Part shown: positions 20,046 through 58,634 of the stretch, piece by piece
Numbering within the stretch: the first letter of the stretch is position 1
How the letters are laid out: each line of letters opens with the position of its first letter
Source: Mobula birostris
Taxonomy: Eukaryota
NCBI RefSeq assembly: GCF_030028105.1
Contig: NC_092383.1
Location: forward strand, 87,067,921 to 87,131,920
Reading direction: 5' to 3'
Length of the DNA stretch: 64,000 nucleotides
Made by a program: the position numbers and the translations under genes
Notes under the pieces: model-generated
Told to the model about the DNA's origin: nothing
Database searches by the model: none
The model's input: only the letters and a program-made list of their open reading frames with translations

Positions 20046-22219
20046 AAATTTAAAAATAAAAAATATACAGGTTTCAATGGACAATGTCCCCTGAGACACT
20101 GGTGCTTTGACTCTCATATCAACTGAGCATTTTTCTCTACAGATACTGCCTGACCCACTGATTTACTGCAGCAGTTTCTGTGTTGTTCTGGTTGTGGGCA
20201 GGGTCGGGGAAAAGGAGGAATTCTCAGAGTGGGCAAGTGGGATGTCCCGCTGGGCGAGCAGATTCAATAGAGTGCGAAGGACTTTGAAGAAAACTGTTGC
20301 AACTAAGCACAGTGCTAACTACTTAATTGGTGGCTCTCATGTACATCCCTTGTGATTCTGGGAATAAAGGAAGATGTTTCCTGTGATTCTCAACATGTCG
20401 TCATTTCTGGCTCAGCCCACAATTCACCAGAATCCCCTTATATGAGTGTTATCATTCAGTCCTGCTAACATTTCAACACTCTTCACAAATTTTTATCACT
20501 TGATCAAATTAATGTACTGTTTTTGTTGCGGACACTTCACGAACCTCAATCGTTTGGATATCAGATATCATCAGCTGGCTCACTGTGATTTCTAATGAGT
20601 CTTCTCCTGCATAATTCCTCATTTATATTCTAAGGAAAAGTTTCATTTCAGACCACTATTTAGATAATGAGTAGTAAGAGCTGATTGACTGATGAACAAA
20701 GTTCCAGACTGTTGTGTTTATTCTGGGTGGCCCTGAGCTATACAAAAAACATATTCAAGACATTTACAGAGTTATCAGCAATGCCAAGAGACAATACCAG
20801 CCCAAAACTGAATCCTAAATGAGTGTCAGATGTGGAATGGCTTAAATGCTATAATAGGCTACAAATAAAGCAGTATGTTTGGCCACACTACATCCCTTCC
20901 CAATGAAGTTTATGCATTTTGAGCATGTTTTGAACAGAAAGGGTTTGGAATGGCATCACTTGCCCTGACAGCCTCCAGTGCTCCTGATCCCACAGTCAAT
21001 GTTGCAGACATCAATTCAGTCTGGAGACTCAGCCCACTGTTACGCCACTGGCGTCTGGGGCAGCAACGAGGGTCCTCCATCTCTGGTGGTGTTTAGTGCC
21101 TCCTTCATCATGTCAGTAGCTGCATCTCAGTTTTCACAACTGTTAGTCATGCAAATCCTGGGTTGAGACTCAGGAATACCATCACACTCAGATGTAGAGT
21201 GATTCTTCACTGCTGTTTCCACAACAGAGTTGTTTTACCTGTCACAGTTCTTAGCCCTGAACTGAACCCCAAAGCTGGCAGCATAACTAATCAGCCAATC
21301 ATGTGGCAGGAATTCAATGCATAAAAACATACGATTAAGAGGTTCAGTGTTGTTTTGACGAATTGAAAAGAAATGTGACATCAGCAATAAACAAAAAAAA
21401 TCCAGTGAGCATCAGTTCTGTGTGTGCAAATGCTTGTTAATGAGAGAAGTCAAAGGTGTTGCAAACTATGACTTTTTTTTAAACAATACATTTTATAAGA
21501 TTTGTGCTTTTTAACAGACTCATTTTTCACAGTATGTGCTGGTTTGTCCCCACTCACTGGCAGAAAGCAGTATTGCAGTTAAACTAATCATTTATCACCT
21601 TCCCCATTTTTCATTGGATAAGTATTAGCCCATTAACCATGTGATGTAATTATTTTGATTATGTAGCCCATTAAATACTTTATTTCTTTTGAAGGAACTT
21701 CCCTAATCTTAACTTTAAAAGTAATATATTTTCAGATGTGCCATCTTTTTGTCTTCGCATTCGCTGCTGTTCATTTACTTCTTAGCTCTTTATTTAGCGT
21801 GCTTAGTGTTTGTATGTTTGTTTGTACTTTAAAATAAATCATCATTAGAATTAAGACTGTTCAACTTTCCTGATTCCTGGAAGAACCCGAAGGATCGTAA
21901 ATAAATTGAGGTTCAATTGAGGACAATGGCCGGACTGGTTCAAGCTGACAGAAAGGTGATAGTGACTCAAATAAACATACATTACAACAGTGGTGTGCAG
22001 AGGAATACCTTTCAATGCACAACATGCCAACACGCATTGTTTTATGCATCAAGTTGCTGCCAGAAGAATGGCTGATTAGTTATTTGCATGAACAAACAGG
22101 TGTACAACTGCACATAATAAAGTGGCCTCTGAGTGTAACTTTTCTGCCTTAAATTAATCCACATAATGACTTTTTCAAGCTTATTCTGAGTCCTGTGGAG
22201 TACCAGGAGAGAAAGCTTT

Positions 22220-22435
22220 CTATTTGGGCCTTGTGGGTTGGCTTTGAAATTTGACACCTGCATAGGTGGTGTTGTCCTCATCCATAACAGAGTGTCCTGC
22301 TCTTGACTTCCTTTTAAATTTCATGTTCGTATACTCAGTTTCATTTTCATTATTAGCCAACTGGGCAGCTGCCTCATTGTTTCGAACATGGTGTAGATCT
22401 GCATAAACGATGTTTTCTTCCAACGTGGCCATTTC
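22220..22435 (-). CDS. Gene 2 last exon: tyrosine-motif tail (IVYADL, TEYTNM, TTYAGV)
   Basis: Acceptor atcatttcag|GAA; ORF-track protein matches the gene 1 tail. Ends at TAG where gene 1 has TAT, so it is 13 aa shorter. Confidence 0.88.
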   Translation of the reverse strand, partial: EMATLEENIVYADLHHVRNNEAAAQLANNENETEYTNMKFKRKSRAGHSVMDEDNTTYAGVKFQSQPTRPK

Positions 22436-25400
22436 CTGAAATGATAAATAAATTCCATTATCTATTTTATGTCTGATGAATGTAGAAGGTGAGGGTGTGA
22501 AAAGTAAGTGGGAGAAGGCGGGATAATAGGGTGAGAAGGAATATAAATCAGTCATGATTGAAGTGCAGAGCAGTCTTGATGGGCTAAATGGCCTAATTCT
22601 GCTCCTATACCTTATGGTCTATGGTCTTGTCCATGGCTTTTATTTTCATTATTTATCTTATGTTTATAGCTTGACTTCTACTCTCGTCTGTAAGTAGAAA
22701 CATGTTCACTACTCTATAAAACAATTGGAGACTTTTGCAGACATCTACCAGATCACCTTCAGTTTTCTGCTTTTAAATAAACCCTGATCCCTTCATTCAG
22801 CTTGTAGAATATAATTTTTCAGAATGTTTGATAACAGTTGATGACTGAGTGGCAGTGATCCCTAGTGAGGACCCGCTACTAAATGTACAACATCGGCATG
22901 TTGCTTCACAACACCAACACACTAAACTGGTCCAAGGTGTTTCACAGGGATTCAGCAAGAGAAGAGGTGGAGAATGAAGTTGGGAATTATTTGGGCAAAT
23001 TACAATACTTTTATGGATTACAGTCTAAATGGTTTGTTGTAGTAGGTTAATTGATCACATGGGTGTAATTGGGTGGCTCGTGGGTCGGAAGGACCGGTTA
23101 CTCTGTTGTATCTCAAATGAACAAAAGTTAAGAGGACAGAATTGCAGGAGTTCATGGAGTTGTCCAGAGGGTGGGATTTGGGCAGCTGAAGCTACTGCTA
23201 TTAGTGGTGGGATGCCGAGACTGGAGGATGCACAAAAGGAACACACAGTTCTCTGAGGGTACAGTTCTTGGAGGGAAAGTGATGCCAACAAGGGAAAATG
23301 TACACAGCAAAGCAGAATCCTCCAACAATCTCCACCCTGAATTACCTTTGGGAATAAGAAAGGCAAATGATAAAATTGAGAAAACAATTGAAGCTCTTTT
23401 ATAATATTCAACCCAATTCTTCAATAAGGAAAAAGTTAGATCAATTGGGACATTAATTATGAAGGTAAGAATAACAAACAAGCTGAAAACTGTGGAAAAT
23501 ATCACTAACAAAGATTGTTCATAACTGACCCAAGACACAATAGAATATTCCTACTGGTATCAGGACTGAGGGGTAGAGTGAGAAAGTGAGTGGGTGAGGT
23601 CAGCACAGAACAGATATTTACTTATTTAGAGATACAGCATGGAAACAGGCCATTCTGGCCCAACAAGCCCATATCACCCAATTAAACACATGACCAAATT
23701 AATGTACTAACGTCTTTGGAATGTGGGAGAAAATCAGAGCACTCAGAGGAGATCCACAGAGTCACGGAGAGAACATACAAACTACTTACAGACGGTAGCG
23801 GAAGTGAACCCGGGTCACTGGCGCTGTAATAGTGTTACGCTAACCGCTATTCTACCGTGCCATCCCCAATTTATTGTTCTGATTAGACCCGCCCTATTTT
23901 TTCTGATTTCACATCAGAGTTTGAGACTCAGAGTGAATATACAAAGTGTAAGCTGAAAAATCATTGAACCCAAAGACAGATTTACACAATTAGGTGTTCC
24001 ATCTCCAACAGTAGAGAAGGGACCAATGTCACTTTTCACCTTTCAGTAAGGATAATAAAGACTGACGCCACTTTGAAGAATGGTCACGTAAAATATTATG
24101 GATACACTTAAGGAAAAGCTGGATTACCACAAGTGAAAGGAACATATAACTGGAAGTATATGCTGATGGGATTCAATGAGAAGGGTGTTCAGACGTTTGT
24201 GTAAAATATTAATACTGGGCTGGACTAGTGAGGATGAATCTCGTGTAAACTGCCATGTAATCCAATTTTGAAACATTCTGAAGCATTCAGACAATTTATA
24301 CTTCATGTTCATACCTGGGTTTCATTCTTGCCACCTCCGTGAGATGTGTTGTACTTGGATTCTGGAAAATACAACATTACTGATAAAAATTCCATGTCAG
24401 GAACAGACATAAAGATTTATTTATTTGTTTATTTAGTGATACAGCACAGAGCAGGCAATTTCAGCCTTCCCCAGCAACCCCCGACAAACCAGATTAACCG
24501 TAACCTAATCATGTGACAATTTCCATTGACCAATTCACCTACCTGGTACGTCTTTGGACTGTGGGAGGAAACTGGAGGACCCGGAGTGTATCCATGCATC
24601 CCACAGGGAGAACATACAGAGACTCCTTTCAGAACGGCACTGGAATTGAACTGCAAACTCTGGAACGCCCCGAGCTGTAATAGCTTCGCACTTAACCATT
24701 ACGTTACCATGGCCCCCATACTGAATCTCAGAACCATGGGAACCCCATCTGCAACACAATAATGATTCTCCATACAGAGCAAACCTCTGCTCTGGTTACT
24801 ACACAATGTTCAGAAAGGATCACATTGTTTTGTCCACCACCTTCTCTGCTATTGAAATCGAATGCTTTCCATCTAAGAACATTGTTATAAGAGTTTTGGA
24901 TTTGAAATTTTAATTGTTTTCTATTGCTAAAAATTCTGTCAGATCTACCGAGCACTTTTTTTACAATGTCTCTGCATATTTTTAGAGAATATATCTCCTT
25001 CACAATATGATGGAGCAGATTACCTGACAATATTCACGCTGTCCCATGAACGTCTCATTGATCTCCCCAGGACTCTGTGGCAGATTGTCCCTCAGGAAGA
25101 AGGAACAAACTGCGCAAAATAAAAATCATCTCATTTTCCTACTGGCCACGAAAGCCTCTTTTCAATTCGACACTGTGATCAGCAATTTCATACAGAATAC
25201 AAATGTCCTATCCTCGATGAACGGTTTTGATGGCCTTTGACTATTAGTGGATGTGAGGTCCCTCCTGATTTGGTTTGCTATTTGATTTCCAGCCACTAGA
25301 TATCACTGCTTATTTGTAAATTTACAGCATCGTTCTGTCCTTACAACTGTGTTTCTAAGCAATTGACCTTTGACATCAGGTCGGCCATTTTAAAGTTACT

Positions 25401-28400
25401 TGTATATTTATTGATTCATTTCTCAGAAGCACTTTGTTATGAGTTGATGGAATTTTAATCAATGTTTGGATCCATCCCTCGTGAGAACACCTCGATGCAC
25501 TGTCTTTTTACTCAGCTCCTGGCTTACTGTAATGTGTTGGTGAACAATCAAACTGCCTTAAAACTACAACTACACCTGGAATAGAGTTAACCGATCTGCA
25601 TATCTTCAGAAAATGAGGAAAACTCTTGAGTGAGGGCAGAATAATGGAAGTTGAAATGTGAACAGATTTTATTTCACAAAGCGTGTCCCATTTTTTAAAA
25701 TAAATAGTCGTCAACTATATAAAGAGAAATGTCAAGGGAAATCAAGAGCAGTACACTCTTTTACTGATGAGGATAATGTCACCAATAAAGATATCAAATT
25801 TCAAAGCCCTCCCATCTTTAAATCTTCATTAATTATATTACCACCCACCTTTTGCCTCACATGTCATCTTTTCTGATGTATTTTTTTCTATTTTGTACTC
25901 TATCAGATTCACACTCTTTTGTGCTTCCTTCAGTACTTCCTCTGCACCTCAAGACTTGTTATCGCTCACATTTTCCAGTTCTGGTGTAAGGTCATTGCCT
26001 TGAAGGATCGGCTGTTCCTCTCTCCACAGCTGCCATCTGACATGCTGAGCATCCAGAGCACTTTTCTGCCATGATCTCAGGTTTTGATCATTTAGGGAAT
26101 TTCTCTTTGGAAAAAAATGCACTCCTTTTGTTCAGATCTTTGCAACAAACAGTAACTGGAGGAAAATGTGACACTGAAAGTAATTGTCTGATCAGTTGGG
26201 GAGAGGGAGAGTCCAGGAAATACATCACAGGGATCAGTTAAATTATTATTTGTTATAATTGTCAGCCAATAAGTTATATTCCATCAGCCGATGAGTTGGA
26301 GGCTGCAGGGGCTTTATTTTCCAGTGATCAACTCCATTTCCCCATCTGATAACAACACACAGAAGATCACTGTGCTCACAGTTCTCTTCACTGGTTTACA
26401 AAGTCTATTTAAGGGACAGACAATTATTTATTTATTTAGCAATACATTGCGAGTAGGCTCTTCCGGACCTTCGAGCCACACTGACACATTAATCCCAACA
26501 AACCTGACTAACCTTAACCTAAACATAGATAATTTACAAAGACCGAGTACCAGACCTGATGTGTCTTTGGACTGTGAGAGGAAACTGGAGCAGCCAGGGA
26601 AACCCTCACATTCAATGGGGAAGACACAGAGACTCCCTACAGAACAGCATCGGAATTGAACTCAGAACTTCAAAAAGCCCCTCGGAGTAATCGTGTCGCG
26701 CTAATCTCTATGCTACCGTGGTGCCCATCTCAGGATCATCTCAATAAAGCAGACCCGTGACTTAATCGATAGCAACTTTCTACAACGAGAGCAGAGAATT
26801 TTCTCCAGTGGTATGCAGTGAATGGTAGATTGGTAAAAGATGCACCTTTTTTTTGAGAATTACATGAGATTATGATTTTATACATACATTGTCCAAATGA
26901 TTGCATTTATTTGGAGGTTGTACTGAGGAACAGCTTATTGAATACACTTTCAATGACAAGAGCTAATTCCCCAAAATTGAATAGAACAGGTGAAACTATC
27001 GAAATCTTTCTTCTACCCAACCTCTTGGTTCTCTACCATTCCATGCTTGAAGTAAGATTCCATCACCTGATGTTTCAAGAATAATGGAGTCATCAGGTTA
27101 CAGTGGAAGCAACACCATTCATTGAGGTGTTGCAACCCAACACATCAACACTCTGATCCTGGCTTTTTGTTGACTGCAGCTAAATCAAGTTCATTAAAAT
27201 TCAGTAGCTAGCTATCATATTCATCATGAGATAATGAAAGAAAATAGACACCTACCCCTGCTTTTCCTCTTCAGGTAGCAAAGTAGACAAACGACAAGTA
27301 GTATGAGTAGAATCCCAACAACACTGAGCACAGTTGTGTAAATGGATCTGTGGTAAAAAAGTAGGAAAGGATCAGTCCTGGTTCATCACTTATTCTTGGC
27401 TATTTATAAAGTCTGGTATTTACACAGCAATTTTCATGAGCTCAGGACATCTGCAGCTCAGAAAATGAACATTAGACATTGTTGACAGTGTGGGAAATTG
27501 CAACAGCCAATCTGTTCACTCCAAAGTCTCACAAGTAGAAATGTGATCATGACCAATGATTGTGATGTTGGTTAAGAGAATAACTACTGTCCAGATCATT
27601 TGAGAATCCTCTCATGTTCTTTTACAAACATTTTGTTGGAACTACTGCACAGTAGGACAGACAGCATTGCTGACCGTGTAGCCAAACCTCTTCCTTGAAC
27701 GGTTTCCGTGGTTTTCTTTATTTCGTGGCTGTCCAGCCTCTTGGTTAGCTTAGTCGAGTCAGGCTGAGAAACCTGTTCTAATATATAACAATGACTTTAT
27801 AACTCAGAACATGAGCTTCTACTGCTATACTTAAATTATTAAATATTTAGTGTAAGAAAATTTGACATCTTGACAAGAAAATCAGGAATACTCAGTTTCC
27901 AATACATGATTTCATTGAAATTAATCATGTCAAGCTTGTTTATCACCAGTTAAAGAGAAACAAATTTCTCTCCCAGATGGGCCTGTTTGAAACCACCTGT
28001 AGAGAGAAGCTTGTACTTTACATTTTATTTGTTGAATCAGTTGTCGTCGTTTCCTTCACAGTATTTTCACAGAAATGAATCGGCCCTGTTGAAAGAAAGT
28101 AAAATTCAGTTTCTTGCTTTGTACTTGCAAGATAAAGAGAGCACAATTGTTAGACCAATGGGTACCTGATCATGGTGGACCAAAAGTGAGCTATTACCCA
28201 ATGCGACATATAAAGATTAAAGATGAGATTTATTTGCCACATGTACATCAGAACTTACAGTGAAATGCAACAATTGCATCAAAGACCAAAACAGAATTTG
28301 TTCTGGGGGCAGCTGCAAATGTTCCATGCTTCCAGTGCCAAAGTATCTTACCTACGCATTACTAATACTAACACGTGTGTTTTTGGAGCCTGGGAGGAAA

Positions 28401-31400
28401 CCGGAGCACCTGGAGGAACCCACATAGTAACTGGGAGAACGTGTGTGTAAATTTTATGTCCGACATTTTGCGATTGCACTAGTGACAGATACCTCATTCT
28501 CAGAAGCCGTCATAAAATTCTGGCAACAATTTTCTACACATATAATTTCTCTAATTTTCTTGCTGGTGGGAGAGTTTCTACCCCTCCAGTGAGCACTCAG
28601 ATATTTGAATAAAGCTCTTCATTTTTGAAAGATCTGTTCAAACTGCACAGTGAAATACACTTATGTACAAGAAAAAACTGATGATCAATATTCTCCTGGA
28701 ATCGTCCCCATTCTGGACCCTGCAGCCTGTGAAACATCCCTTTCAACATGATCTCCATCATCCCTCAGGGAATATTTCATGCATTAAAGTGATCCCCTCA
28801 GAAGCTTTAATTTAGATGATCAAACGCAACACTCAAAACATATCTGTGAATCAATTAGATCCAAGGAAATGCGTCATGTTCTGCAAAAGCAACAAAGCTG
28901 AGTATTTGAAGTAGTTTAGAATTCAAAACAAAACAAAGTAATCGATTAAAACATTGAAAATATAGAACGTGAGCAAGTTTGTAGGGAACATATGAAAACC
29001 TCAATAGGTATATGAGGAGAAGATTAATCAAAAATATAGGATATCTAACAGACAGAAATGGGGGAATTTATAAGGGGCACAAAGAAACACCAGGCCAATC
29101 CAATACATTGGTTTTGTCTTTTGTCCTCTTCACCACATTTCCTGATACCAATGTCAGGCTAATTGCTCTATAATTCCCTCTTTTCTCTCCACCTCCTTTT
29201 TAAAATAGATTGGTTAGCTTCTCCCCAATCCACTGGGGAGAAGTGGCCAACAATGCAACTCTATTTTTCTCGTGCTAATTCCTGATGCTCTCTGGGATGT
29301 AGAATATCAGAACCTGGAGATTTGTTGGTTTTCAATCACATCAATTTTCCATCACCATTCCTCTATTATTGGTGATTGCCTACTTTCTGCCTTGCAATAA
29401 ACCCTGTGATCTCCAGAAATCAGTCTGCTGATCCTTTGCTTGCCTCCTTCCATAACAATAAAATCTTTCATCAGACCAAATCTGCACACAATATCACTTG
29501 CCCAAGAGCAAGGAACAATTCAAAGTCTTACCAATTTAAGCTTTGGTCTAGAATGGAAAGGTCGAGTACGAGCCGAATCGGGGCAGCGGGACCCAGGCAT
29601 GAGAGTGTATTGAGAGGCAGGGACTGGGTCCGAGGGCGAGGAACAACCTGCAGCGTGTCCGAATTCAGCACCCGGCCAGATTGAAAACATCAGGGTGTCA
29701 GGACTGGGCAAGAGGGACAAGCTGATGTGAGGCTAACTACTCCTGAAGGATCTCCGCTGAACTGAGGCTGTGGCCTGCAACTAACGGGCTCCTAGATTGG
29801 CTGTGACAGGCTTTATGGCTGTGGACTCACGTGCATGAACTTCAGTCCTGAATGTTATTTGCATACTCTTACTGTTTGCATGATCTGTTTTTTTTTCTCT
29901 GCACATTGGGTATTTAACGGTCTTTTTTCAATAGGTTCCAATTGGGTTTCTTTGTTTTGTGGCTGGGTGTAAGGAGACAAATTTCAAAGTTGTATATGGT
30001 ATACATCCTTCGATAATAAATGTATTTTGAACTTTGAACTTAACCCAATCTGTCCAATAAATTTTCTGTGCTTGAAACTGCTCATCATAGAATTCATTTG
30101 AGCTCAATCTTTCTACATTTTTGCTTAGAGGCTCAGTGAACTAGGATACGCAATTTTTTGAGTCACGTCTGACAATTCCATCTACAAGGAAAAGATATGT
30201 GGGTTTTCAGGACACAGACAATCCGTGTGATTTCCTTACTTTTTATCAAGGTAAAACTGCTTTGATTTGATGACTCAGCCCATTTTCTATAAAATTCAGA
30301 ACAGATAATTGTTTATAAATTCAGGCAGAACAAATATTGGTAAAAGTCTCCAAGGAGCTCTGCCACAAGAAAGCAGCATCCATCATCAAGGACGGCTACC
30401 ATCCAGGCCATGCTCTCCTCACGCTGCTGCCATTGGGAAGGAAGTGTCACACCAGCAGGGTCAGAGACAGTTATTACCCTTCAACCATCAGGCTCGTAAA
30501 CCAGCGTGGATAACTTCACTCACTTCAACACTGAACCAAACAACAGGCTCACTTTCAAGGAGTCTAAAAACTTATGTTCTCAATATTATTTTTTTACTAT
30601 TTAATAATTTGTTTCTTTTATATTTGCACAATTTGTCTTCTTTGCAACGTTGGTTGGTTATACATTTTTGATTGTGTGGAGTTTTTCATTAATTCTGTTT
30701 TATTTATTTGCATCTACTGTGAATGCCTGCAAGAAAATGGATCTCAGGGTAGTATGTGGTGACATATATGTAACTTGATAATAACTTTACTTTGAACTTT
30801 GAAGTGGATTACCTTAGAAGTCTATGTTAATTAACAGCCAGAAGAAATATTACCAGATGAGACACCCAGCCAGTGAGAGCAGATCAGAGGCAGGAGACAC
30901 TGTGGTGGGTGACTCCTGTTTCAACTGCTGTGCTGAAAGGCTTTTCATTCTCTGAAAGGTGGTGACAACATACACTCCATGCTCCTGAGTGAAGTTCCAA
31001 CAAGAAAATATCCAGCATGCACCAGTCATTCAGATTTTTTTTTTAAGCATGTCGTACCAGACATTCAGCCATTCTTGTCCAGCACATGGTGCCAGGATTA
31101 ACCAGGTCACATTATGAACGTTCCTGACTTGACACTTGCATTTTTTACGAGGCCAAGTGGCCAGCTCAACACTCAACTCAGCACGGGTGGAAAGCGTGCT
31201 CAGGGGTGGCCCGGCCTGGATTCGAACTCTGGAACCTTCGCTTCAGAGTCCAGTGTGCTCCATTGACCATCATAAAGAATCAAACCTTGCACCATTTACC
31301 CGTGCTGTTGACTTCAATCACATTTCTGCAGATACTGACACTGTTGGAGATGGACAAGTTGACCACTTCACTGGACTTCTCTCCCTTTTCCCCCAGGTGC

Positions 31401-34400
31401 TCACCCAATGAGAGATCTGTCACCTGACCCGGTTCGTTTCCTAATACTAGATTGAGTATGGCATTCCCCCTCATCGGCCTGTCAACATACTGGCCTTTGG
31501 TCTTACTTCTTCTCTCCCTAATCCACTGTATGAAGAAATTTATGCGATATCACATCATCATCTGACTACAAAGAATCTTCTAATATTTCTAACTTTCTTA
31601 TCATGCAGTGATGACTCCTCCATTTCCAAATAGCTTACGTCATGTAGCAGCTCCGAGGCTAATTGTACATTCACGGGTTACAGTTACATGTCAACTCTGA
31701 GAAAAGCAGCAACTTCCATTTGCAGATTCACACCCGATTGATGAATGCAAACTGCATCAAGCTGCAATCACTCATTTTGTTCAACACCCAACTTTTAATT
31801 CCATTGTTCATTCAACTTTAAGGTCTTTGAGTATTGTTTGCAAATATACTCAATTTCAATTAATTCTTATTTTATGTTCATTAAATTTTTGCATCATTCT
31901 CAGAAGAGAAAATTAACTTTATTATTAAAGAACATATTGTATATGTCACAATATAGGACCATAAGACAAAGGAACAGAATTAGGCCATCTGGCTCATTGG
32001 TCTCCTCCACCATTCAATCATGGCTGATCCTTTTTTTTTAAATCTCCTCCTCAACCCCAGTTCCCAGCCTTCTCCCCGTAACCTTTGATGACATGTCCAA
32101 TCAAGAACCTATCAATCTCTTCCTTAAATACATCCAATGACCTGGCCTCCAAAGCTGTATGTGGCAACAAATTCCACAAGTATACCACCCTTTGGATAAA
32201 GAAATTTCTCCACATCTCTGTTTTGAAAGGGCGCTCCTCTATCCTGAGGCTGTGCCCTCTTGTCCTAGACTCTCCCACCATGGAAAACATCTTTTCCTCA
32301 TCTACTCTGGAGTGTTGTCTACAATTTCCCTTCCTTTGCCTCCCTCCCTTCTTAAAGTGTGGAGTGGCACTTCCAGAGTCTGGTTATTTTTCAAAGATAA
32401 CCACTAATGCCTGCACAATCTCTTCACTTACCTCTTTCAGAAACCTGGGTGTAGTCCATCTGATCCAGGTGACTTATCGACCACCTCAAGCACCTGCTCC
32501 TTAGTAAAAGTAACCACGCTCACTTCTGCCCCCTGACATTGCTGAATTTCTGTCATTTCCACTGATATTTGATATATTTTCCTTTTGTTTTTATGACAGT
32601 GTCAATGTCTCACAACTCAACACCTCTTCTAGCTTTTTCAAAGCTGAAGCGAGAAGTATGAATGAAATGCTCTCAATTTGTCTGGATGTGCAAGTCCAAC
32701 TATGTTTGAGGTGCTGCACATCTTTCAGGAGGAAGTGACAGACTTAACTGTTCACTACACTCTATTTCTACCCCATGGTGGCTGCAATTTGTGGCTTCTA
32801 CAAATGCAAAGAAATTCCTTACCCTCACTAGAAGTATAAGCGCAGCAGTACACAGTAACAGCTATAAATATTGAAATGTATACCCCCTTGAAATTAGAAC
32901 ATACTGTTGCCGTCGATTTCTGTCGTATAACTGCAGGTCTCTCCTTTGCTGTAGACTGTCAAATTAACCATTGCACTGGATCTCGCTCCATGCCAATTTG
33001 AGGCACTGCAGTAATATCGTTGGTGCTGGTGGTTGAAGGATTTACAACATAGAGCCAGTTCATTTGTATCTGAGATCTGTGTATGTCCAGATTGTTTATA
33101 CCATTTGTACTGAATGGGAAAGGATCCCTGGAGAGACTCACAGGAAAGTAACACTAAGCCTCCGAGACGTGAAACATTTGCTGGTGATGGATATCGAACC
33201 ACAGGAGCAGACACAGGTTCTGTGGAAAAGAATTCAACAATCAGACACTGAATGAACAACTGCAAATCAAACTCTCTTCTGCCACTTTTTCAGGTACACC
33301 TGTGCACCTACTTGTTAATGCAAATATCTAATTAATCTATTATCTGGCAGCAACACTGTCCATAAAAGCATGCAGATGTAATCAAGTGGTTCAGTTGTTG
33401 TTCAGGCCAAACATCAGAATGGGGAGGAAATGTGATCTTAGTGACTTTGACCATCGGATGATAGTTGGTGCCAGAAGGGGAGGTTTGAGTGTCTCAAAAA
33501 CTGTTAACTGTTGATGTCCTGAGATCTTCATGCACAACAGTCACTAGAGTTTACAGAGAATGGTGTAAAAAAACAAGAAAGATCCAGTGATCAGCTATTA
33601 TGTGAGCAAAATGCCTTGTCAATGAGAGATGTGTGGACTGCAATGTTCTGACAAGAACTGTCCCTTGTTATTAAAATAACAAGCCATGGGTGACAAAAGA
33701 CATTAAGGACATCCTGAGCACTAAAAGGAGGGTGTTTAGAGATGGAAGCAGGGAGGAGCTGAGGGCAATACAGAGTGACCTGAAAGCCAGGATCAGGGAG
33801 GCTAAAGACAGGTACAGGAGGAAGCTTGAGTGGAAACTCCAGCAGAACAACATGAGAGAGATCTGGAGGGGGATGAGGACCATCACTGGGTTCCGGCAAA
33901 CTAGCAACAGAGGAGCAGAAGGCAGTGTGGACAGGGCCAATGAACTTAACCTGTTCTTTAACAGATTTGACAGTGTGGCCCCTGTCCATCCCGCACAGGA
34001 GACATCTGTTGTCGGCCCCCAACCAACACATATTCCACTCTCCCCTCCTACCCCTCCTCACAGTCCCCCACCCTGCTCTCATGACTATACCCCTTCCCCA
34101 CACGAAACCACCACGGTGGGCTTCACAGCTCTACAGGTGAGAAGACAGCTGTAACATCTCAACCCAAGCAAGGCTGCAGGACCGGATGGTGTCAGTACCA
34201 GGGTGCTCAAAGCCTGTGCCCCTCAGCTATGTGGAGTATTTCGCCATGTATTCAACCTGAGCCTGAGGCTCTGGAGGGTTCCTGTATTGTGGAAGATGTC
34301 CTGCCTCGTCCCTGTGCCGAAGATGCCGTGCCCCAGCGGCCTCAATGACTACAGACCAGTGGCATTGACCTCCCACATCATGACCCTGGAGAGACTTGTT

Positions 34401-37400
34401 CTGGAGCTGCTCCGGCCTATGCTCAGGCCACACTTAGATCCCCTGCAGTTCGCCTTCCAGCCTCGACTCGGAGTTGAGGATGCCATCGTCTTCCTGCTGA
34501 ATCGTGTCTACGCCCACCCGGACAAGCCAGCGAGCACTGCGAGGGTCATGTTTTTTGACTTCTCCAGTGCGTTCAACACCATCCGCCCTGCTCTGCTGGG
34601 GGAGAAGCTGACAGCGATGCAGGTGGATGCTTTCCTGGTATCATGGATTCTTGATTACCTGACTGGCAGACCACAGTACGTGTGCTTGCAACACGGTGTG
34701 TCCGACAGAGTGATCAGCAGCACTGGGGCTCCACAGGGGACTGTTTTGTCTCCCTTTCTCTTCACCATTTACACCTCGGACTTCAACTACTGCACAGAGT
34801 CTTGTCATCTTCAGAAGTTTTCGGATGACTCTACCATAGTTGGATGCATCAGCAAGGGAGATGAGGCTGAGTACAGGGCTACGGTAGGAAACTTTGTCAC
34901 ATGGTGTGAGCAGAATTATCTGCAGCTTAATATGAAAAAGACTAAGGAGCTGGTGGTAGACCTGAGGAGAGCTAAGGTACCAGTGACCCCTGTTTCCATC
35001 CAGGGGGTCAGTTTGGACATGGTGGAGGATTACAAATACTTGGGGATACAAATTGACAATAAACTGGACTGGTGAAAGAACACTGAGGCTGTCTACAAGA
35101 AGGGTCAGAGCTGTCTCTATTTCCTGAGGAGACTGAGGTCTTTTAACATCTGCCGGACGATGCTGAGTTTATTCTACGAGTCTGTGGTGGCCAGTGCTAT
35201 CGTGTATGCCGTTGTGTGCTGGGGCAGCAGGCTGAGTGTGGCAGTCACCAACAGAATCAACAAACTCATTCGTAAGGCCAGTGATGTTGTGGGGATGGAA
35301 CTGGACTCTCTCACAGTGGTGTCTGAAAAGAGGATGCTGTCTAAGTTGCATGCCATCTTGGTCAATGTCTCCCATCCACTACATAATGTACTGGTTGGGC
35401 ACAGGAGTACATTCAGCCAGAGACTCATTCCACTGAGATGCAGCACTGAGCGTCATAGGAAGTCATTCCTGCCTGTGGCCATCAAACTTTACAACTCCTC
35501 CCCTGGAGGGTCAGACATCCTGAGCCAATAGGCTGGTCCTGGACTTATTTCATAATTTACTGGCATAATTTACATATTACTATTTAACTATTTATGGTTG
35601 CATTACTATTTATTATTTATGGAGCAACTGTAACGAAAACAATTTCCCCCCGGATTAATAAAGTATGACTATGACTATGTCTGTCAGTACCTCCAGTTGA
35701 ACTTTGCCTCTTTATGTGTTTTGCCACTATCTGTCAGTCTGTGGTTTTGTATTGCCATGTGCTCTTGTTTGTGTTCATGCCCATATGCTCCTGTCCCTGC
35801 TCCTGCTCTACTCCGGTCCCTGTATTACTGAGTACTCTGTCTTAGACCTGTTTCTCATTATTACCTGTTTTGCTGCCACTTCTGTCTCATTGTGTTCCAC
35901 CTATCATCTGCCTCTCTGTTTATTCTCAGTGTGTTTTAGCCCTCCATTTTTACCTGTTTGTTGCCAGATTGTGCCAGTGAATTTTCCTGAGCCTTTCCAG
36001 CATTTGTATCTGTACTCTGTCCATCAGAATATCGACTCTGCCTGTTTCCCAGTTCTGGTTTTTGGATTTCTCTGGATGTGTTGATCTCTGCCTGAACTTT
36101 GACACCGACTTCGTTTGCACCTCAGGATCTGTTACTCAATTAATATCACTGTGTGCACAGTGCTGGGTCTGCGATTGGATCCCTGCTCCAGTGCCCTGAC
36201 AAGCTCAGAGGAGAATGGCCAGACTGGTTCAAACTGACAGAAATACAAATAACCACATTTTATGACAGTGGTGTGCAGAAGAGCATCTGGACACACAACA
36301 CATCAAACCTTGAAAAGAATCTGCCATAACCGCAGAAGACCATATAGATAAACTCAGTGGCCACTTTGTTAGGCATAGGAGGTTCCTGATGAAGTGGCCA
36401 TTGAGTGTTTAGAGACACAACTTGTGAGATATCCGTCACATGTTTGGAGGCTTTCAGGAGAGAATGAAATTGTAACTGGGTTCAGTGAACTGCTGTATAG
36501 AGGGAAACTTTTGACACTGATATTAATGCAGAGATTTTGAGGGATGGACAGGGTCTGGACAAAGATCTTGTAATCTGTGCAGAGGCTGAACAGGAGGAGG
36601 AGAAGATTACTGTTCTTCAGACACATCCACGAGATGGGTATTTCTCCATTCAACAAGCTTCACCCTGGGATCAGCACATCGTCATTCCCCAGGACATCTA
36701 ATGCTCTGACCCTTCCCAGAGGAAACATGGATGACATATTTATTTTACTGAAGGCACAAATCACTGAGAAACCTACCATCAGATACTTGTAAATATACAT
36801 CAAACATCAGATCGGGACCTGGTGTTGTAATTCCACAGCTGTACCATCCTGTATCTCCAGTGTGAAGATTCTCCATAGTAACAGTAAATATTCCCTGTTC
36901 CGGGTTATCTGTGATTGACACTCGTCCACTCCGTCCATGTTGCCCTTTTGTTTCCACTAAAACTGAACATTGGCGAGTCCATCCATGGCACCAATACTTT
37001 GTGTGTGAGCGGTACTTTGCTTCATAGTGACAATCGATTGTGATCGCTCTTCCCACAACTCCTCTTACAGGTTTCTCTGCCCACAATGCACCTGAAACTG
37101 AAGGAGGCATTTTCAGATTTGAGAGGAAAGGAACAACTTAATATTTCCCATGAAACCACAGCCAATGGTTTTGGTGTGAAGTGCAGTCAGTGCTGTTACT
37201 GTGTCAGCTGTGTCAGTGCTCTCTCCCCTGTGTCAGTACATTGTGGGTTCACTTCCCACTCCAGAGTCCTGAGCAGAAAACCAGGGCTGTTCTTCCAGTG
37301 CAGTACTGAGGGAGAGCCGCAATATTGAATTATAAATTACAACAGATCATGCTGGACCTCCAAGTGTCCACAAGGATCCCAGGTAATTTATTTGGGATAG

Positions 37401-38479
37401 ATAGAGCTACTGTACATGGAGATTTGTGTGTGTATGTTTCTTGTGTTCCAGGGTTGAATCGGGGGTCAGTGGGATCATTTGAGATTATGTTTCAATTCTC
37501 TCCATAATGACAATGTCCTGACTTCCTCCGCACTTACAGACAAGTTTATAAACTGCAGTAAGAAACTCCTCATGATGTCTGAAACTGAGCCCTCTGGTTC
37601 TGATGGAAATTTTATATTCTGTACCTGTCAGGTATTTCTCTGTGTAGTTAGAAGGTGCTGCAACAGTGGTCATTACCACTTTGGTGTCCAGAAATCCAGG
37701 TGTGATTTCATTTCCTTTAGGGACTTATTTAGTGTTTATATCTAATTTCTGGAATTAAAAACCACATATCCATAATGATAATGATCAACTACCAGATTGT
37801 CAAAATCCCATCTGGATCAGAAAGGCCTTTAGGGACAGAAATCTCTCGTCCCTCCCCACCCAGGTTATCTTTGACTCCACATCTAGAAATGTTCTTTACT
37901 AAACGCCCCACTGAAATGGCCCAGGAAAGACACTGATAACAGGAGAATAACATCAATTTTCATAGTGATCCTAACAGAGTGAGATTAGATTCCAGTTGAC
38001 ATGATATTCCTGTTTAACAGCCTCTAGATTCCATCAGCTGGACATATTCTTCCCTCACCTGACTCCACACTATTCCCCTTTTCTTCTTGTCCGCTTCCAC
38101 CTCTCACCAATCTCCAAAGTCCACCCCTTTTCCTTCCCTTTCCACTTGCCTGTCGTGCTTCACCCCTCCTAAGTCCCCGACGACCTAGTAGACCCAGTCT
38201 TACACCTCCCCTCTCATATTTCGACCATCTCCCTCTCCACTCACACTTGAGTGTCACAGACCAAATTGTAGGCGATTCCCTTCCCGTAACAGAAGCTGCT
38301 GAGTTCCCCCAAGAGTGCACTCTGAACTCCAATTTCTGATATCTTTAGTGTCTACAGATATTCAAGTACTGTTCCGCGAATGGTGTATGACCCCCCAAAC
38401 CAACACTGCTTATGCAAACGTCCAGCACAATTTGTCACTTACCAGGTAGCGAAACAATCAGGAGAATTGAAGCCCACAT
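22220..38479 (-). CDS. Gene 2 (whole model): CD300/pIgR-like V + C2 Ig inhibitory-type receptor (MDIR-like), 7 coding exons, 376 aa
   Basis: Exons 38443-38479, 36777-37097, 32905-33219, 28022-28085, 27256-27347, 25024-25109 and 22220-22435. All have GT-AG boundaries; intron phases 1,1,1,2,1,0 are mutually consistent; total 1131 nt = 377 codons with no internal stop. Confidence 0.82.
25024..25109 (-). CDS. Gene 2 exon 6: cytoplasmic (V)CSFFLRDNLPQSPGEINETFMGQREYCQ
   Basis: Acceptor ttttattttgcgcag|, donor TCAG|GTAATC; 86 nt, phase 1->0. Same length, splice sites and open frame as the paralog at 1542-1627. Confidence 0.62.
25734..25808 (+). pseudogene. Degenerate inverted relic of the tyrosine-motif last exon
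   Basis: GKSRAVHSFTDEDNVTNKDIKFQS vs KSRAGHSVMDEDNTIYADIKFQS (4206-4280); the tyrosine is lost. Confidence 0.7.
27256..27347 (-). CDS. Gene 2 exon 5: uncharged transmembrane segment SIYTTVLSVVGILLILLVVCLLCYLKRKSR
   Basis: Acceptor tttttaccacag|, donor AGGG|GTAGGT; long hydrophobic run followed by a basic stop-transfer; phase 2->1. Confidence 0.9.
28022..28085 (-). CDS. Gene 2 exon 4: Cys/Thr-rich stalk (R)PIHFCENTVKETTTTDSTNK
   Basis: Acceptor tttctttcaacag|, donor AAAT|GTAAAG; 64 nt, phase 1->2, bridging C2 to TM exactly. Homologous exon at 61494-61571. Confidence 0.82.
31671..31696 (-). CDS. Candidate alternative terminal (secretory) exon of gene 2: (K)LTCNCNP*
   Basis: Acceptor gcttttctcag| in the C2-stalk intron, phase-1 compatible. 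The paralog at 46958-46983 keeps the acceptor, CxC, Pro and stop. Confidence 0.45.
31950..32510 (-). mobile_element. CR1 3' fragment (other CR1 pieces at about 1990-2250, 6085-7060, 11300-12730, 44700-45180 and 62170-62600)
   Basis: RGHSLRIEERPFKTEMWRNFFIQRVV, the CR1 ORF2 C-terminus. Confidence 0.8.
32905..33219 (-). CDS. Gene 2 exon 3: C2-type Ig domain (FcR-like/PECAM-like) with short extension
   Basis: EPVSAPVV...LSCESLQGSFPIQYKWYK...YYCSASNWHGARSSAMVNLTVYSKGETCSYTTEIDGN. Acceptor ttttccacag|; donor AACA|GTATGT; phase 1-1, 315 nt. Confidence 0.9.
33670..35685 (+). mobile_element. 5'-truncated Rex1/Babar LINE (RT domain) with (ATGACT)n tail
   Basis: DYRPVALTSHIM, DPLQFAFQ, FFDFSSAFNTI, GAPQGTVLSPFLF, KFSDDS; in-frame stops at about 34152 and 35073. 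Confidence 0.92.
35690..36201 (+). mobile_element. LTR-like fragment ending ...ccctgaCA, between the Rex1 and the resumed Tc1 element
   Basis: Pyrimidine-rich LTR-type sequence with a gtctgcgattggatcc...tgaca end; Tc1 halves at 33290-33625 and 36205-36410. Confidence 0.5.
36777..37097 (-). CDS. Gene 2 exon 2: V-type Ig domain, CD300/pIgR/TREM-like
   Basis: SGALWAEKPVRGVVGRAITIDCHY...KYWCHGWTRQC...RVSITDNPEQGIFTVTMENL...DTGWYSCG...LQVSD. Canonical C-W-C plus the extra KYWC-x6-C pair. Acceptor ccttcag| (alternative 6 nt downstream at 37091); donor GATG|GTAGGT. Confidence 0.93.
38443..38479 (-). CDS. Gene 2 exon 1: signal peptide MWASILLIVSLP
   Basis: ATG, hydrophobic leader and phase-1 donor CCTG|GTAAGT; joins the V exon to give ...LPVSGALWAE. 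Confidence 0.88.
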
Positions 38480-38545
38480 TGTTTTATTCACAGAGACGCA
38501 GCCAGGACCTGTTTCTCCTCAGAGAGAAGTAATTGTGAAATAAAA

Positions 38546-38570
38546 ATGAGGAAGAAGGCAGCAGGAAGTT
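38546..38570 (-). promoter_or_regulatory. ETS/PU.1-type motifs (GAGGAA, CAGGAAGT) about 70-90 nt upstream of the gene 2 ATG
   Basis: aaatgaggaagaaggcagcaggaagtt; the same block is conserved upstream of the second leader (about 43632-43656). No TATA box evident. Confidence 0.4.
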
Positions 38571-40142
38571 GGATCAAAAAACCAAGGGTGACACAGATGG
38601 TGTGTGGCACGTGACAATCTGGGAAGCATTTCGGTATATTTAGCAAGAGAGAAATACTTATATAATTCTGAAAGACTGAACGAAATGGTGACAAGAGTTG
38701 AAGTATTGGACACAAGCAACAGTAGAGGTTCTAATCTGAACGCACGGTAAATGGCTGGAGGTGTCCTGAAACAGGGGATTAATCTGAAATATTGACCACT
38801 CTGCCTTCTCAGACCTCACATGACTCCCAAAGCTCCCCCAGAAGTTTTATTTTTTGCTTGACTTAAAATACTCACTGGAGTTTAGAAGAAAGACGGAATC
38901 TCATAGAAACCTATTGAATATTGAAAGGCCTTGTGTGAGTGGACGTGGAGAGAATATTTCCTGCAGTAAGTGAGTCTACAAACAGATGGCACAGCCTCAG
39001 AGTACGTGAGGTTGATAGATTCTTGATTTGTAAAGGCGCTAAAGGTTACAGGGTAAGGCAGGAGAATGGGGTTGAGAAGGTCAAATTCTGCTCCAACGCC
39101 TTTGGGGCTTATGGGCTTCTAATACAGGCACCAATCTTGTGAATCTATTCTGCAGCATGAATTCTTGAATGCTCATTGCTCATTCAATGCCGGAAGCCTT
39201 CCTTAACAACTACTTTACCATCTCCCTCTGTTCCAAATCTCGGGGAGTTATGGACTTGCACTCCAAGATTTGTACATCTTTCTGGACCTGCCCTGATGGT
39301 AATTCAATCAAACACGACACATGAGGAAGACATGACATGAGTTCTGATGAAGCGCCTCAGCCTGAAAGGTTGATTGTTTACTCTTTTCTACAGACTCTGC
39401 CTGGTCGTCTGAGTTCCACCAGCTTTTTCCCTGTGTTGCCATAATTTTTGGGAACTTGCTACTGAGGAGGGAGCAAAGTGGGAAATAAGTGAGATGTAGA
39501 AGGGGCTTTTCCTGCAAACTCTGATTACATATTTGGCTTCATTCTTTCTTCTCTTTGAGCCTTGAAAGCTCATCTCCTCTGAATTCTATTCCATCTGTCA
39601 GTGCAATTTCAAGACCTCTGATGGGATTTCACTTTGCTTCAGTTAGATTTGAGGGGAAACCTTCAGAATGGATTTACACATTCACGATGGTGTGAAATCC
39701 ACATCAGATCCATTCTTAAAGCAAATCAACTCCATTTGACAGTAAATGATCTGTGTGAGTAGACAACCCCTGTAGTTTCTATTTCCCACAGAATAATAGA
39801 GCACTGTAAATGGCAGTTCACACTTGTCAAAGGAGAGAACATTTCTATCTTTCCTATCTCACTCCCATAGTCTCCCTGACACCTGAAACTGCACACCTTT
39901 GCTCACCTTCTCAGTAGCTAACTTCCCAGCATCTTTGTTCACCTTGTTAGTTCTCTCAATGTTACTCTATCCAGATTCATACTGTGCGATTCCCTGGGGC
40001 AGCTGAAGTCTGAGTAGTGCTTCAGTATCGGGGATAACGATTCTCACCAGTCACACGAATTGGAGAAGTAATACAGAATCAGGATCAAAATCAGGTTTCA
40101 TATCACTGGCATACTGTATGCTGCAAAATTAGCTGTAGATGT

Positions 40143-42599: not shown

Positions 42600-44420
42600 G
42601 TTTTTAAAGGCCGAAACCTGTGAGATATCCATCACCTGTTTGGTGGCTTTCAGGAGGAAATGGAATTGTGACTGGTTTCAGTGACTTGCCAACGCATTTG
42701 GCACTGAATTTCGAAAAAGTTCTGGTAATCCACGCTGAGGCTAAGTAAGAGGAGAAGGAGTTTGATGTTCTTCAGGCATATCAACGAGATGGGCATTCCT
42801 GCATTCAACAAACCGAACCCAGAGACAAGCATGTCATCACTCCCCGGGACATCTAATGCATGGACCCTTCTCAGAGGAAACATGGATGAGACAGAAATCT
42901 CTCATCCCTACCCACCAAGGTTTACCTTTGACTCCAGATCTCATAATATTCTTTCCTAATTGCCCACTGAAATAGCCCAGGAAAGACTCTGATTTCAAGA
43001 CAATAACATCGAATATCACAGAGATCCCTGCTGTGTGAGATCAGATTCCAGCAATGGGAGACCTGATGTTTCTGCTTAACAGCCTCCAGGAGATTTCTCC
43101 AGCTGGAAATATTCTCCGCACCCCCCCCCCCCAGCTGACTCCGGTCTATTACCCTTTTCGTGTTGTCTTCTTCCATCAGTCACCAAGCTCCAAACTCCAA
43201 CACTTTTCCTCCCCATTCCATCTGCTTGCCATGTTTCACCCATCCTCAGATTCCAACCACCAGGAGAATTCAGTCTCAGACCTCTCTTTCTCCTATTTAC
43301 ACTCTCTCATTCTCCACTCTGACTTCATGCAGATTCTTGACCCAAAGCTTGGTCTAGTCCCTCCCCACTGACAGACATTTCTTGGCACATTGACTTCCTC
43401 CAGAAGTTTGCTCTAAAATCCAGATTCCGACATCTTCACTGTCTACATTTACTCAAGCACTGCTCTGTAAACTATGCATGACCCCAAATCAACACTGCTT
43501 ATGCAGAAGTGCAGTGTTGTTTGTCACTCACAGGTCAGGAAACCAATCAGAACAATCAATGTCCATAACATTTTATTGACAGAGACACAGCCAGGGCCTG
43601 TCTGTCCTCAGAAATCAATGACTAAAATTAAAATGAGGAAGAAGGCAGCAGGATGTTTGATCAAAAAACAACACTGACCCAAGTGGTGTGTGGCACGTGA
43701 ATATCTGAAAGGCTTTTAGTTATATTTAGCAAGACAGGAACATTTAAACAATTCCCAAAGACTAAATGAAATGGTGAAAAGTGTTAAAATATTGGACACA
43801 AGCAGCAGTAAACGTGCAAATCTGAAGGAAAAATAAACAGCTGGAGGTGTTCTGATTAATCTGAAATGTTGACCACTCTGCCTCCGCAGATCCCGCCTGA
43901 CTCCTGAAGGCAGGAGAATGGGGTTGAGGGAGAACATAAATCAGCCAGGGGAGTGATGGACTTACACTCCAAGATTTGGACATCATTCTGGATTTGCCTT
44001 GGAGATAAATCAAGCAAACATGTTCTGGGGAACTTGCTGCTGAGAAAGGAGCAAAGTAGGAAATAGCTGTCATGCAGAAGTGCTTTTCATGCAAAGTAAC
44101 CATGCGGTACATCCATTCATTTCCCTAGATTCTGCCAGGCCTTCTGAATTCCTCCAACATTTTGTGTTGTTGCTTTTGGTTTTATTATAGTCGAGGGTTA
44201 AGGTGATCCAAGAATGTACATTGTACAGTATGAGTGCTGACAGTCTGTACGTTGTACAGTATACGTGCTGACTCCATTGCATCAGTCACTGTTGTCATCT
44301 GTGTAATATTCACCCTCAGTGAAGGATGTAGTCAGAACTTCGGTCTTCTTTACTTGTCTTACCAGAAAGAATATAGAGAAGTGTCAATGGTTGCTACACA
44401 CTGACAGCTTGTTCTGGTCT
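42600..44420 (-). pseudogene. Partial tandem duplicate of the gene 2 5' region (36340-40980) with the V exon deleted
   Basis: Collinear matches: 42600-42889 with 36340-36734, 42890-43800 with 37833-38720, and 44180-44420 with 40560-40960. The junction at 42889 skips the equivalent of 36735-37832. Confidence 0.8.
43532..43571 (-). CDS. Second (orphan) leader exon MLWTLIVLIGFLT
   Basis: Paralog of 38443-38479 with ATG, hydrophobic leader and phase-1 donor ACCT|GTGAGT. Confidence 0.7.
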
Positions 44421-45439
44421 CTTCTGATATTGCCCCATCACTTCTTGGAAAACGTCTCAACAGCCATGGTTCAATACGCTCATGAGAACAAAGCAGGGAT
44501 ACAAAACATCTTCAGCAAAGCATTTTGTTTGAGCTACTAGATCACTGAACAACAATAACAATTTGGCCATTTTACCATTGTGTTTAAATCTAATCACAGT
44601 CTTATGCACACTTTTAAATACAATGGTGGGATTGTAAAACATTTACAACTCTGATGTTGAAAAGTTATCCAAGAACTACAGCTTTATAAGTTATTGGTCC
44701 GACTGCACTTGAGAATATGGTGAACAGTACTGGGCCCATTATCTTCGAAAGGGTGTGCTGTAATTGGAAAGGTGTCCAGAGGAGGTTCCCCAGAATGATC
44801 CCAGCAGTGAAAGGGTTAATGTATGAGGAGTGTTTGATGGCTAAGGACCTGTACTCACTGGAGTTTAGAAGAATGGTGGGTGTGGTGGGGGGGGGGGCAG
44901 GGGGGTTCTCATTGAAATCTCTTGTATGGTGAAGGGCCAAGAAGCTAGATGGAGTGTGTGTGGAGAGGATGTTTCCTATGGTGGGTGAGTCCCAGATGAG
45001 AAGGTGCTGTTCCTTCAGAATTCATTGTCACAGACTGCAGTGGAGGACAAATCATTAGATATATTGAAAGTGGAGGTTGATATGTTTTTGATTTGTAAAG
45101 GTGTTAAAGGTTATGGGGAGAATAGGGTTGAGGGGGATAATAATTCAGCCATAATAGAATGAGGAACAGACTCAATGGGCTGAATGGACTCAGTTTTAAC
45201 AGGTCCAGATTCACAAGTGGGATCACTGCATCTGGAATTATCTCCGGCTCATCAACATCCATCAGATAACCCTGAGCTGAAGATGTAATGAGCTCCAAAC
45301 AGACTCTGGTGTTACTGCTTCACGTCCTCACAGAGTATGTAAACGATATTATGTGATATTCCTCAGTGTCAGTGAGGCGTTTCAAAGTTCAAAATTCAAA
45401 TTAAATTTATTACCAAATATGTGCTTGTCACCATTTATG

Positions 45440-46900: not shown

Positions 46901-46957
46901 CATTATAATGATAATACAGTTCACTTTCTCTCATTTTCAAGACCCTTTATTGTACAT

Positions 46958-46983
46958 TCATGGGTCACAGTCACAGATCAGTA
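46958..46983 (-). pseudogene. Orphan paralog of the candidate secretory exon: xLICDCDP*, with AATAAA just downstream
   Basis: aacttttctcag|TA CTG ATC TGT GAC TGT GAC CCA TGA atgtacAATAAA. Flanking 46960-47120 aligns with 31670-31840. Confidence 0.45.
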
Positions 46984-58610: not shown

Positions 58611-58634
58611 TGTTTGTTACTGACCTGGACTTAC

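Follow-up and report, generated by a model that had tools for sequence, protein, structure and literature searches.

A 64,000-nucleotide stretch of the manta Mobula birostris genome (assembly GCF_030028105.1, contig NC_092383.1, positions 87,067,921 to 87,131,920 of the forward strand), hereafter the window, carries on its minus strand a seven-exon gene for an immune-type receptor. Very probably this gene is an intact, expressed, inhibitory MDIR2-type member of the modular domain immune-type receptor (MDIR) family of cartilaginous fish, situated in a manta cluster of ~2 Mb. It is an ordinary new member of that family. A V domain followed by a C2 domain, with a tail bearing a putative immunoreceptor tyrosine-based inhibitory motif (ITIM), is the known MDIR2 build and not the new hybrid architecture that a preliminary description of this DNA had proposed, since the same build is present in MDIR2 of the clearnose skate and, among RefSeq entries, in numerous proteins from rays, skates and sharks.

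Gene structure

The gene extends from window position 38479 (ATG at 38479-38477) to a TAG stop at 22222-22220. Direct reading of the sequence gives seven exons with GT-AG introns throughout, consistent phases and no internal stop, and the whole window is free of N. The limits, the intact reading frame and the seven exons are as previously described, but the length is not. Instead of 376 residues, the model supported by homology and RNA has a coding sequence of 1092 nt that encodes 363 residues, in the following exons:

38443..38479, minus strand: exon 1, 37 nt, ATG and leader (MWASILLIVSLP); donor GTAAGT, end phase 1; read directly
36777..37097, minus strand: exon 2, 321 nt, V-set domain; phase 1 to 1; homology
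32905..33219, minus strand: exon 3, 315 nt, C2-type immunoglobulin (Ig) domain; phase 1 to 1, donor GTATGT
28022..28085, minus strand: exon 4, 64 nt, stalk (RPIHFCENTVKETTTTDSTNK); phase 1 to 2; homology and RNA joint 28022/27347
27256..27347, minus strand: exon 5, 92 nt, uncharged transmembrane segment (IYTTVLSVVGILLILLVVCLLCYL) and KRKSR; phase 2 to 1; RNA joints 27347/28022 and 27256/24361
24315..24361, minus strand: exon 6 (cyt1), 47 nt, cytoplasmic (ESKYNTSHGGGKNETQ); phase 1 to 0; RNA joints 24361/27256 and 24315/22435
22220..22435, minus strand: exon 7, coding part, tyrosine tail and then TAG at 22222-22220; acceptor tttcag/gaa at 22435, start phase 0

The leader MWASILLIVSLP matches the leaders of homologues, MWTSILLIVFLP. 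The V exon acceptor reads …ccttcagtttcag/gtgca… and is a tandem site, with one CAG at 37100-37098 and another at 37094-37092. Use of the upstream CAG gives LP-VSG-ALW, and the exon start was placed there (37097) because all homologues read the same residues. The downstream acceptor of an initial 361-residue model was dropped, as VSG is present in all homologues. An ab initio search for the two short exons (one of phase 1 to 2, the other of phase 1 to 0) returned numerous phase-compatible candidates, between which only homology and RNA could decide. The stalk at 28085-28022 was picked from the likeness of RPIHFCENTVKETTTTDSTNK to GPIYICENTVTEKTTTT… in P0042, and cyt1 at 24361-24315 from the likeness of ESKYNTSHGGGKNETQ to ESKSNTHHRGKANGTQ in P0058. 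Swapping cyt1 (47 nt) for the open, phase-compatible segment 25109-25024 (86 nt) yields exactly 376 residues, and we conjecture that the earlier length arose from the choice of that segment. It was rejected as an exon, having neither an RNA joint nor a counterpart in the homologues.

Transcription and splicing

Four public runs (X1-X4), from one organism and one study, each contain 89-159 Mb of contigs, which is the size of a transcriptome. Their contigs were mapped on window positions 22150-28149 only. Contigs of all four runs contain the joints 28022/27347 (stalk to transmembrane), 27256/24361 (transmembrane to cyt1) and 24315/22435 (cyt1 to last exon) exactly, and the introns removed at these three 3′ joints have CT..AC ends on the plus strand, corresponding to GT..AG on the gene strand. 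Mismatches are absent from the exonic pieces listed, except in one 62-nt contig of X3, which has three differences. The joined 36-mers of two of the junctions were not found in the 4.0-Gb genome with up to 2 mismatches allowed. Since the joined sequences are absent from the genome, the joints represent spliced RNA and not a processed copy. The gene is thus transcribed, and three of its splice junctions are exactly as modelled.

Words of the last exon and 3′ untranslated region (UTR) are 85-94% present in X1-X4, and words of the C2 exon are 63-89% present in runs X17, X4, X18 and X2. A 1119-nt contig, 981 nt of which lie beyond 22150, extends the 3′ UTR to at least ~21169. Two intronic stretches, 22550-22749 and 24550-24749, reach contig depths in the thousands in all four runs, show many odd joints and are probably copies of an interspersed repeat that is both abundant and transcribed.

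Membership of the MDIR family

The MDIR family has been in the literature since 2006 (Cannon et al., Immunogenetics 58:362, which is reference 35 of PMC3031540). An HMMER search with the V exon returned 138 cluster representatives at E ≤ 1e-30, and the top ones that were looked up come from rays, skates and sharks. Residues 1-361 of the model align with independent proteins of other rays. With protein names taken from UniRef and NCBI, the principal relatives are:

P0207, Hemitrygon akajei, 376 aa: 74.6% identity, end to end
P0209, Hemitrygon akajei, 379 aa: 75.6% identity, end to end
P0208, Hemitrygon akajei, 371 aa: 72.9% identity, end to end
P0211 ("CXADR-like membrane protein"), Hypanus sabinus, 373 aa: 65% identity, end to end
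P0170 (UniRef A0S0E…, "Modular domain immune-type receptor 2"), Rostroraja eglanteria (clearnose skate), 416 aa: 49% identity over residues 1-359, E 6e-126
P0160 (MDIR3), skate: 51% identity over residues 10-356, aligned with the membrane-proximal half of P0160
P0174 (MDIR5): 62% identity over residues 1-220

RefSeq names family members inconsistently, as pIgR-like, FCRL5, CMRF35-like, CXADR-like, A33-like or uncharacterised. The inhibitory form of MDIR2 and MDIR3 reportedly has an uncharged transmembrane segment and at least one cytoplasmic ITIM. The sequence of the manta gene has both, with IVYADL as the candidate ITIM. It also has the MDIR modules, a CD300/pIgR/TREM-like V domain and a C2 domain like that of Fc receptor (FcR) homologues, each on its own phase-1 exon, and the V, C2 and tail exon counts of the cluster are those of a large multigene family.

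MDIR2 of the clearnose skate shares the leader, the CD300/pIgR-type V domain, the FcR-like C2 domain, a Cys-containing stalk, an uncharged transmembrane segment and a tail with tyrosine motifs. Both proteins match the same Pfam profile and both belong to a large multigene family. The manta protein differs in its stalk, which has 21 residues compared to ~45 in MDIR2, and in its tail, which lacks an insert with an extra motif region and the C-terminal IYASV, has YTNM where MDIR2 has IMYAAV, and ends at a derived stop. The nearest full-length relatives, the three Hemitrygon akajei proteins and P0211 of Hypanus sabinus, have in common with the model the exon-junction residues, the short stalk, the transmembrane segment and the layout of the tail. 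They run 13 residues further (…QKAFSPGTPRDLE), and their names are automatic and inconsistent. The M. birostris protein P0238 ("FCRL5") was rejected as the product of this gene: it matches 31 residues within the V exon at 100% identity, though in a different reading frame from that of the gene, and its remaining exons are foreign to the gene.

Domains and tail motifs

The order of leader, V domain of CD300/pIgR type with KYWC-x6-C, FcR-like C2 domain, stalk, transmembrane segment and tyrosine tail, already recognized in the preliminary description, agrees with the domain matches. The V domain matches Pfam V-set at 8e-14. Its closest solved relatives by sequence are CD300A (5e-20), CD300LF/CLM-1 (9e-20) and pIgR D1 (1.4e-13 for the domain), followed by TREM2, NKp44 and FcmuR. 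Across the family there is little or no variation at C20, C34, C41 and C85 of the V exon or in the KYW motif. The C2 domain matches the Pfam profiles Ig_2 (2.7e-7), Ig_3 and Ig_C17orf99, and its best solved relative by sequence is FCRL5, the repeated domains of which align from a PVSxPV start (best domain 1.4e-6).

An AlphaFold2 model of the V domain, built with 38 family sequences, has a predicted local distance difference test score (pLDDT) of 96.4. Its top fold match is CD300lf (TM-score 0.92-0.95, root-mean-square deviation 1.2 Å, 40-42% identity), then CD300a and CD300c, and then pIgR D1 (TM-score 0.83-0.88). The C2 model has a pLDDT of 84, and Foldseek returned only weak, generic C2/I-set matches for it.

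The transmembrane segment contains no charged residue. The tail has three candidate tyrosine motifs: IVYADL, which fits the ITIM consensus [ILVS]xYxx[ILV]; TEYTNM, which fits the pYxN and pYxxM consensuses; and TTYAGV, which would be of the immunoreceptor tyrosine-based switch motif (ITSM) type, TxYxxV. The tail of the orthologue P0207 matches Pfam SIT, the SHP2-interacting adaptor, at 7e-7.

With CD300A and CD300LF the gene has in common the second disulfide (C-x6-C), an uncharged transmembrane segment, an ITIM tail and paired activating relatives. CD300 proteins, however, consist of a single V domain without C2, whereas the manta C2 domain follows V in the same open reading frame (ORF). By analogy, the manta gene would work like an inhibitory CD300 without being a canonical CD300 member. 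FCRL5 and FCRL4 resemble it in their tyrosine-motif tails, and the manta C2 domain aligns with the repeated membrane-proximal domains of FCRL5, but FCRLs contain no CD300-type V domain. The N-terminal domain of the manta protein is a CD300-type V-set domain, which sets it apart from the C2-only FCRLs and classical Fc receptors.

The likeness to pIgR and the FCRLs raises the question of whether the protein is instead an immunoglobulin receptor, filling in cartilaginous fish the role of pIgR, FcmuR or FCRL, and not a CD300-like sensor of lipids or cell surfaces. The V domain matches both pIgR D1 (1.4e-13) and FcmuR (5e-4), the C2 domain matches FCRL5 and FCRL4, and RSHTKYWC in the region of the first complementarity-determining region (CDR1) resembles NRHTRKYWC of pIgR D1, a domain of the same V subtype that also shows KYWC and the additional disulfide. 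The V domain is nevertheless nearer to CD300 than to pIgR D1 both in sequence (75 vs 54 bits) and in predicted fold (TM-score 0.92-0.95 vs 0.83-0.88). Moreover, pIgR combines 2-5 V domains with a transcytosis tail that lacks an ITIM, and it contains no C2 domain, whereas the manta protein has one V domain, a C2 domain and a tail of ITIM type. We regard the proposal as very unlikely. RefSeq calls the family "pIgR-like", which denotes similarity and no more. Two reviews yielded nothing on pIgR or CD300 in sharks. Overall, similarity weakly favors a CD300-like ligand over immunoglobulin, and the modeled fold, closer to lipid-binding CD300lf than to pIgR D1, is only a lead in that direction.

Retention of intron 4

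One intron appears in contigs of all four runs, and contigs through the other introns are much fewer:

27348..28021, minus strand: intron 4, retained in part of the transcripts (contigs in X1-X4)

The contigs cover 27318-27902 in X2 and X4, 27318-27856 in X1 and 27372-28051 in X3, the last reaching into the stalk exon. The stalk donor is weak (AAT/GTAAAG), and read-through gives ATG-TAA, so that the ORF ends …TDSTNKM at residue 246, upstream of the transmembrane segment. Transcripts that retain intron 4 would therefore encode a soluble V-C2-stalk form ending …NKM. All 15 stalk copies found genome-wide end AT/GTAAAGTA (AT/GTAA), while the exon bodies are only 72-97% identical. Two RefSeq isoforms, P0042 of Hemitrygon and P0193 of Hypanus, terminate with M directly after the stalk; for Hemitrygon, we infer the read-through stop from the end of the P0042 protein only.

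These observations allow the suggestion that the gene mainly makes the soluble V-C2-stalk protein, which would act as a secreted decoy or in an opsonin-like way, with the membrane form being secondary. Contigs spanning intron 4 have a word depth of the same order as those with the stalk-transmembrane joint, and a higher one in X4, but abundance cannot be read reliably from contig depth. The donor lacks the consensus G at both -1 and +5, and M-ending isoforms are annotated in Hemitrygon and Hypanus. The invariance of ATG-TAA in 15/15 stalk exons points the same way, yet a GTAA donor after any phase-2 exon gives such a stop for free. The stop also lies upstream of two further exon junctions, which makes nonsense-mediated decay likely, and spliced stalk-transmembrane joints are present in every run. 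We consider a predominantly soluble product unlikely. A broader proposal is that the invariant weak stalk donor AT/GTAA is a switch to soluble V-C2 in all MDIR genes, and that, for the present gene, this form or the receptor itself binds polymeric Ig by way of the V domain, given its likeness to pIgR D1, in a role of the Fc or secretory-component type. To our knowledge, no receptor of either type has been identified in cartilaginous fish, and we give this proposal little credence. A membrane-bound inhibitory receptor remains the preferred reading of the gene.

The cluster and the mosaic origin of the gene

In the cluster, V exons number at least 98 and C2 exons at least 72, and there are 12 matches to the tail exon (about 9-12 tail exons); all lie on one contig (C18:85.9-87.9 Mb). 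Two parts of the gene resemble different members of it. Window positions 30440-39500, comprising the promoter, leader, V exon, a long interspersed nuclear element (LINE), the C2 exon and a relic of a second C2 exon, are 94-98% identical to a block ~60 kb away (L001/L002), and this likeness stops at ~30440. Positions 21283-29603, with the stalk, transmembrane, cyt1 and tail exons and the 3′ UTR, are an inverted duplicate, at 82-89% identity, of the 3′ half of a convergent plus-strand neighbor (window 800-5243 and L006). Judged by these alignments, two duplication units contributed to the gene, which is a mosaic. The same V-C2-stalk-transmembrane-tail combination is found in the Hemitrygon orthologues, and the combination is therefore old.

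The two boundaries could also mark an assembly chimera, in which the 5′ unit (V, C2) was wrongly joined to the 3′ unit (stalk, transmembrane, tail). Homology to the 98% paralogue stops at ~30440 and that to the inverted neighbor at ~29603, and the C2-stalk joint that bridges the two units is not among the joints seen in the contigs mapped on 22150-28149. However, orthologues with 73-76% identity over their full length have the same combination, the window has no N, and stalk-exon contigs carry ~29 extra upstream letters, as expected of a spliced upstream exon. We therefore consider a chimera extremely unlikely and keep to a genuine mosaic gene.

Two further features lie within its introns:

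34203..35075, plus strand: LINE reverse-transcriptase ORF within intron 2, antisense to the gene (Pfam RVT_1, 2.9e-24)
31298..31387, minus strand: 3′-terminal relic of a second C2 exon, within intron 3 and outside the transcript model (tblastn, 90% identity to P0238 residues 216-245)

The LINE is present in the young paralogue (L002) and absent from an older one (L004). The relic comprises the last ~30 codons of the C2 exon, the remainder having been replaced by unrelated sequence, and the same relic occurs in the 98% paralogue (L001:9824-9910). Intron 3 also contains a short open segment flanked by AG and GT, a phase-compatible candidate exon (31675-31696, minus strand, KLTCNCN), and intron 5 an inverted, degenerate tail-exon fragment (25739-25813, plus strand) with 64% identity over 25 aa to residues 335-359.

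In the young paralogue L001/L002 (G000:C18:87149500-87169499) the V and C2 exons are open and differ from those of the gene by 6 and 8 nt. Five of the six V-exon differences are non-synonymous, but 6 and 8 differences are too few for a ratio of non-synonymous to synonymous polymorphism (pN/pS). No transmembrane or tail exon of this paralogue was found in L001, within ~9 kb downstream, and it may be truncated or secreted-only. A paired activating twin of the gene could therefore not be demonstrated.

The convergent plus-strand MDIR gene has a tail exon at 4082-4345 that is 86% identical to the tail of the present gene, keeps the ITIM and ends …RPKYKAFSPGTPQDSE and a stop. On the other side, 3′ exons of an upstream neighbor lie on the minus strand of window 47070-61561: a stalk exon (61561-61493), a transmembrane exon with Arg, of activating type (58727-58629), and cytoplasmic exons (52688-52590 and 47156-47070). 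Compared with all other copies, the stalk exon of this neighbor is short by 1 nt, as is its V exon (L004:3060-3382), and the neighbor is probably a pseudogene. Window positions 44000-58000 have a strongly positive GC skew (+0.16 to +0.40) over ~14 kb, unlike the rest of the window.

A derived stop at the C-terminus

The gene ends …TRPK-TAG-KAFSPGTPQDSE-TAA. The codon of the TAG is Tyr in the neighbor copy at 4082-4345 (plus strand) and Gln in the stingray orthologues, and both continue with the same residues (KAFSPGTPQDSE and a stop in the paralogue). The former end of the reading frame is thus still recognizable:

22181..22219, minus strand: former end of the frame, now 3′ UTR, with twelve codons that remain conserved (KAFSPGTPQDSE) and then the ancestral TAA (comparison with homologue and paralogue)

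A derived premature stop might suggest a decaying or non-functional copy that is transcribed while becoming a pseudogene, like many of its neighbors in the cluster. The failure to find a matching RefSeq protein, the 1-nt deletions in the V and stalk exons of the adjacent upstream paralogue, and the mostly non-synonymous V differences of the young paralogue (5/6) would fit such a course. On the other hand, all seven exons are open with intact splice sites, neither Ig domain has lost any conserved Cys, Trp or Tyr, the 13 residues lost contain no tyrosine motif, and splicing is correct in four runs. We find decay very doubtful and retain the reading of an intact gene.

Discussion

Several points weigh against an intact, expressed inhibitory MDIR. 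The RNA joints are those of the three 3′ junctions, and the leader-V, V-C2 and C2-stalk junctions are predicted from homology only. All runs come from one study and their RNA nature is a guess. The 5′ half is 98% identical to a paralogue, and the C2-exon words in the runs could derive from that copy. The intron-4-retaining transcripts might be unprocessed RNA or targets of nonsense-mediated decay. In the tail, the middle motif is TEYTNM where the ancestral form is I/T-V-Y-A-x-V/M, and the derived TAG removes the last 13 ancestral residues, a stretch that contains no tyrosine. Binding or signaling data for any MDIR were not found in the literature consulted. Finally, homologue searches of protein databases found no Mobula birostris protein more than 75% identical to the model, and RefSeq may therefore not annotate the gene as coding.

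The product is a type I membrane protein of 363 residues. Its signal peptide is followed by a CD300-like V domain, which has an extra C-C′ disulfide, and by an FCRL-like C2 domain; then come a short stalk that contains Cys, an uncharged transmembrane segment and the tail. The V domain would bind the ligand, for which our first guess is a lipid or another cell-surface ligand bound in the manner of CD300. Src-family kinases would phosphorylate the tail tyrosines, and the phosphorylated sites would recruit SH2 phosphatases (SHP-1, SHP-2 or SHIP), which would dampen activating signals in leukocytes. Activating-type paralogues, of which the cluster has many, may be among the sources of the damped signals. 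This scheme of phosphatase signaling of the ITIM/ITSM type is suggested by the motifs together with the biology of CD300 and FCRL.

The gene adds one well-supported, seemingly unannotated inhibitory member to the manta MDIR cluster, and it corrects the idea of V+C2 as a new hybrid. Its mosaic make-up is a clear example of module swapping in such receptor families. The family-wide stop after the stalk donor, together with the retention seen here, may offer a cheap and testable path to soluble receptors. Views of vertebrate immune receptors would remain as they are unless a ligand is found, above all an immunoglobulin.

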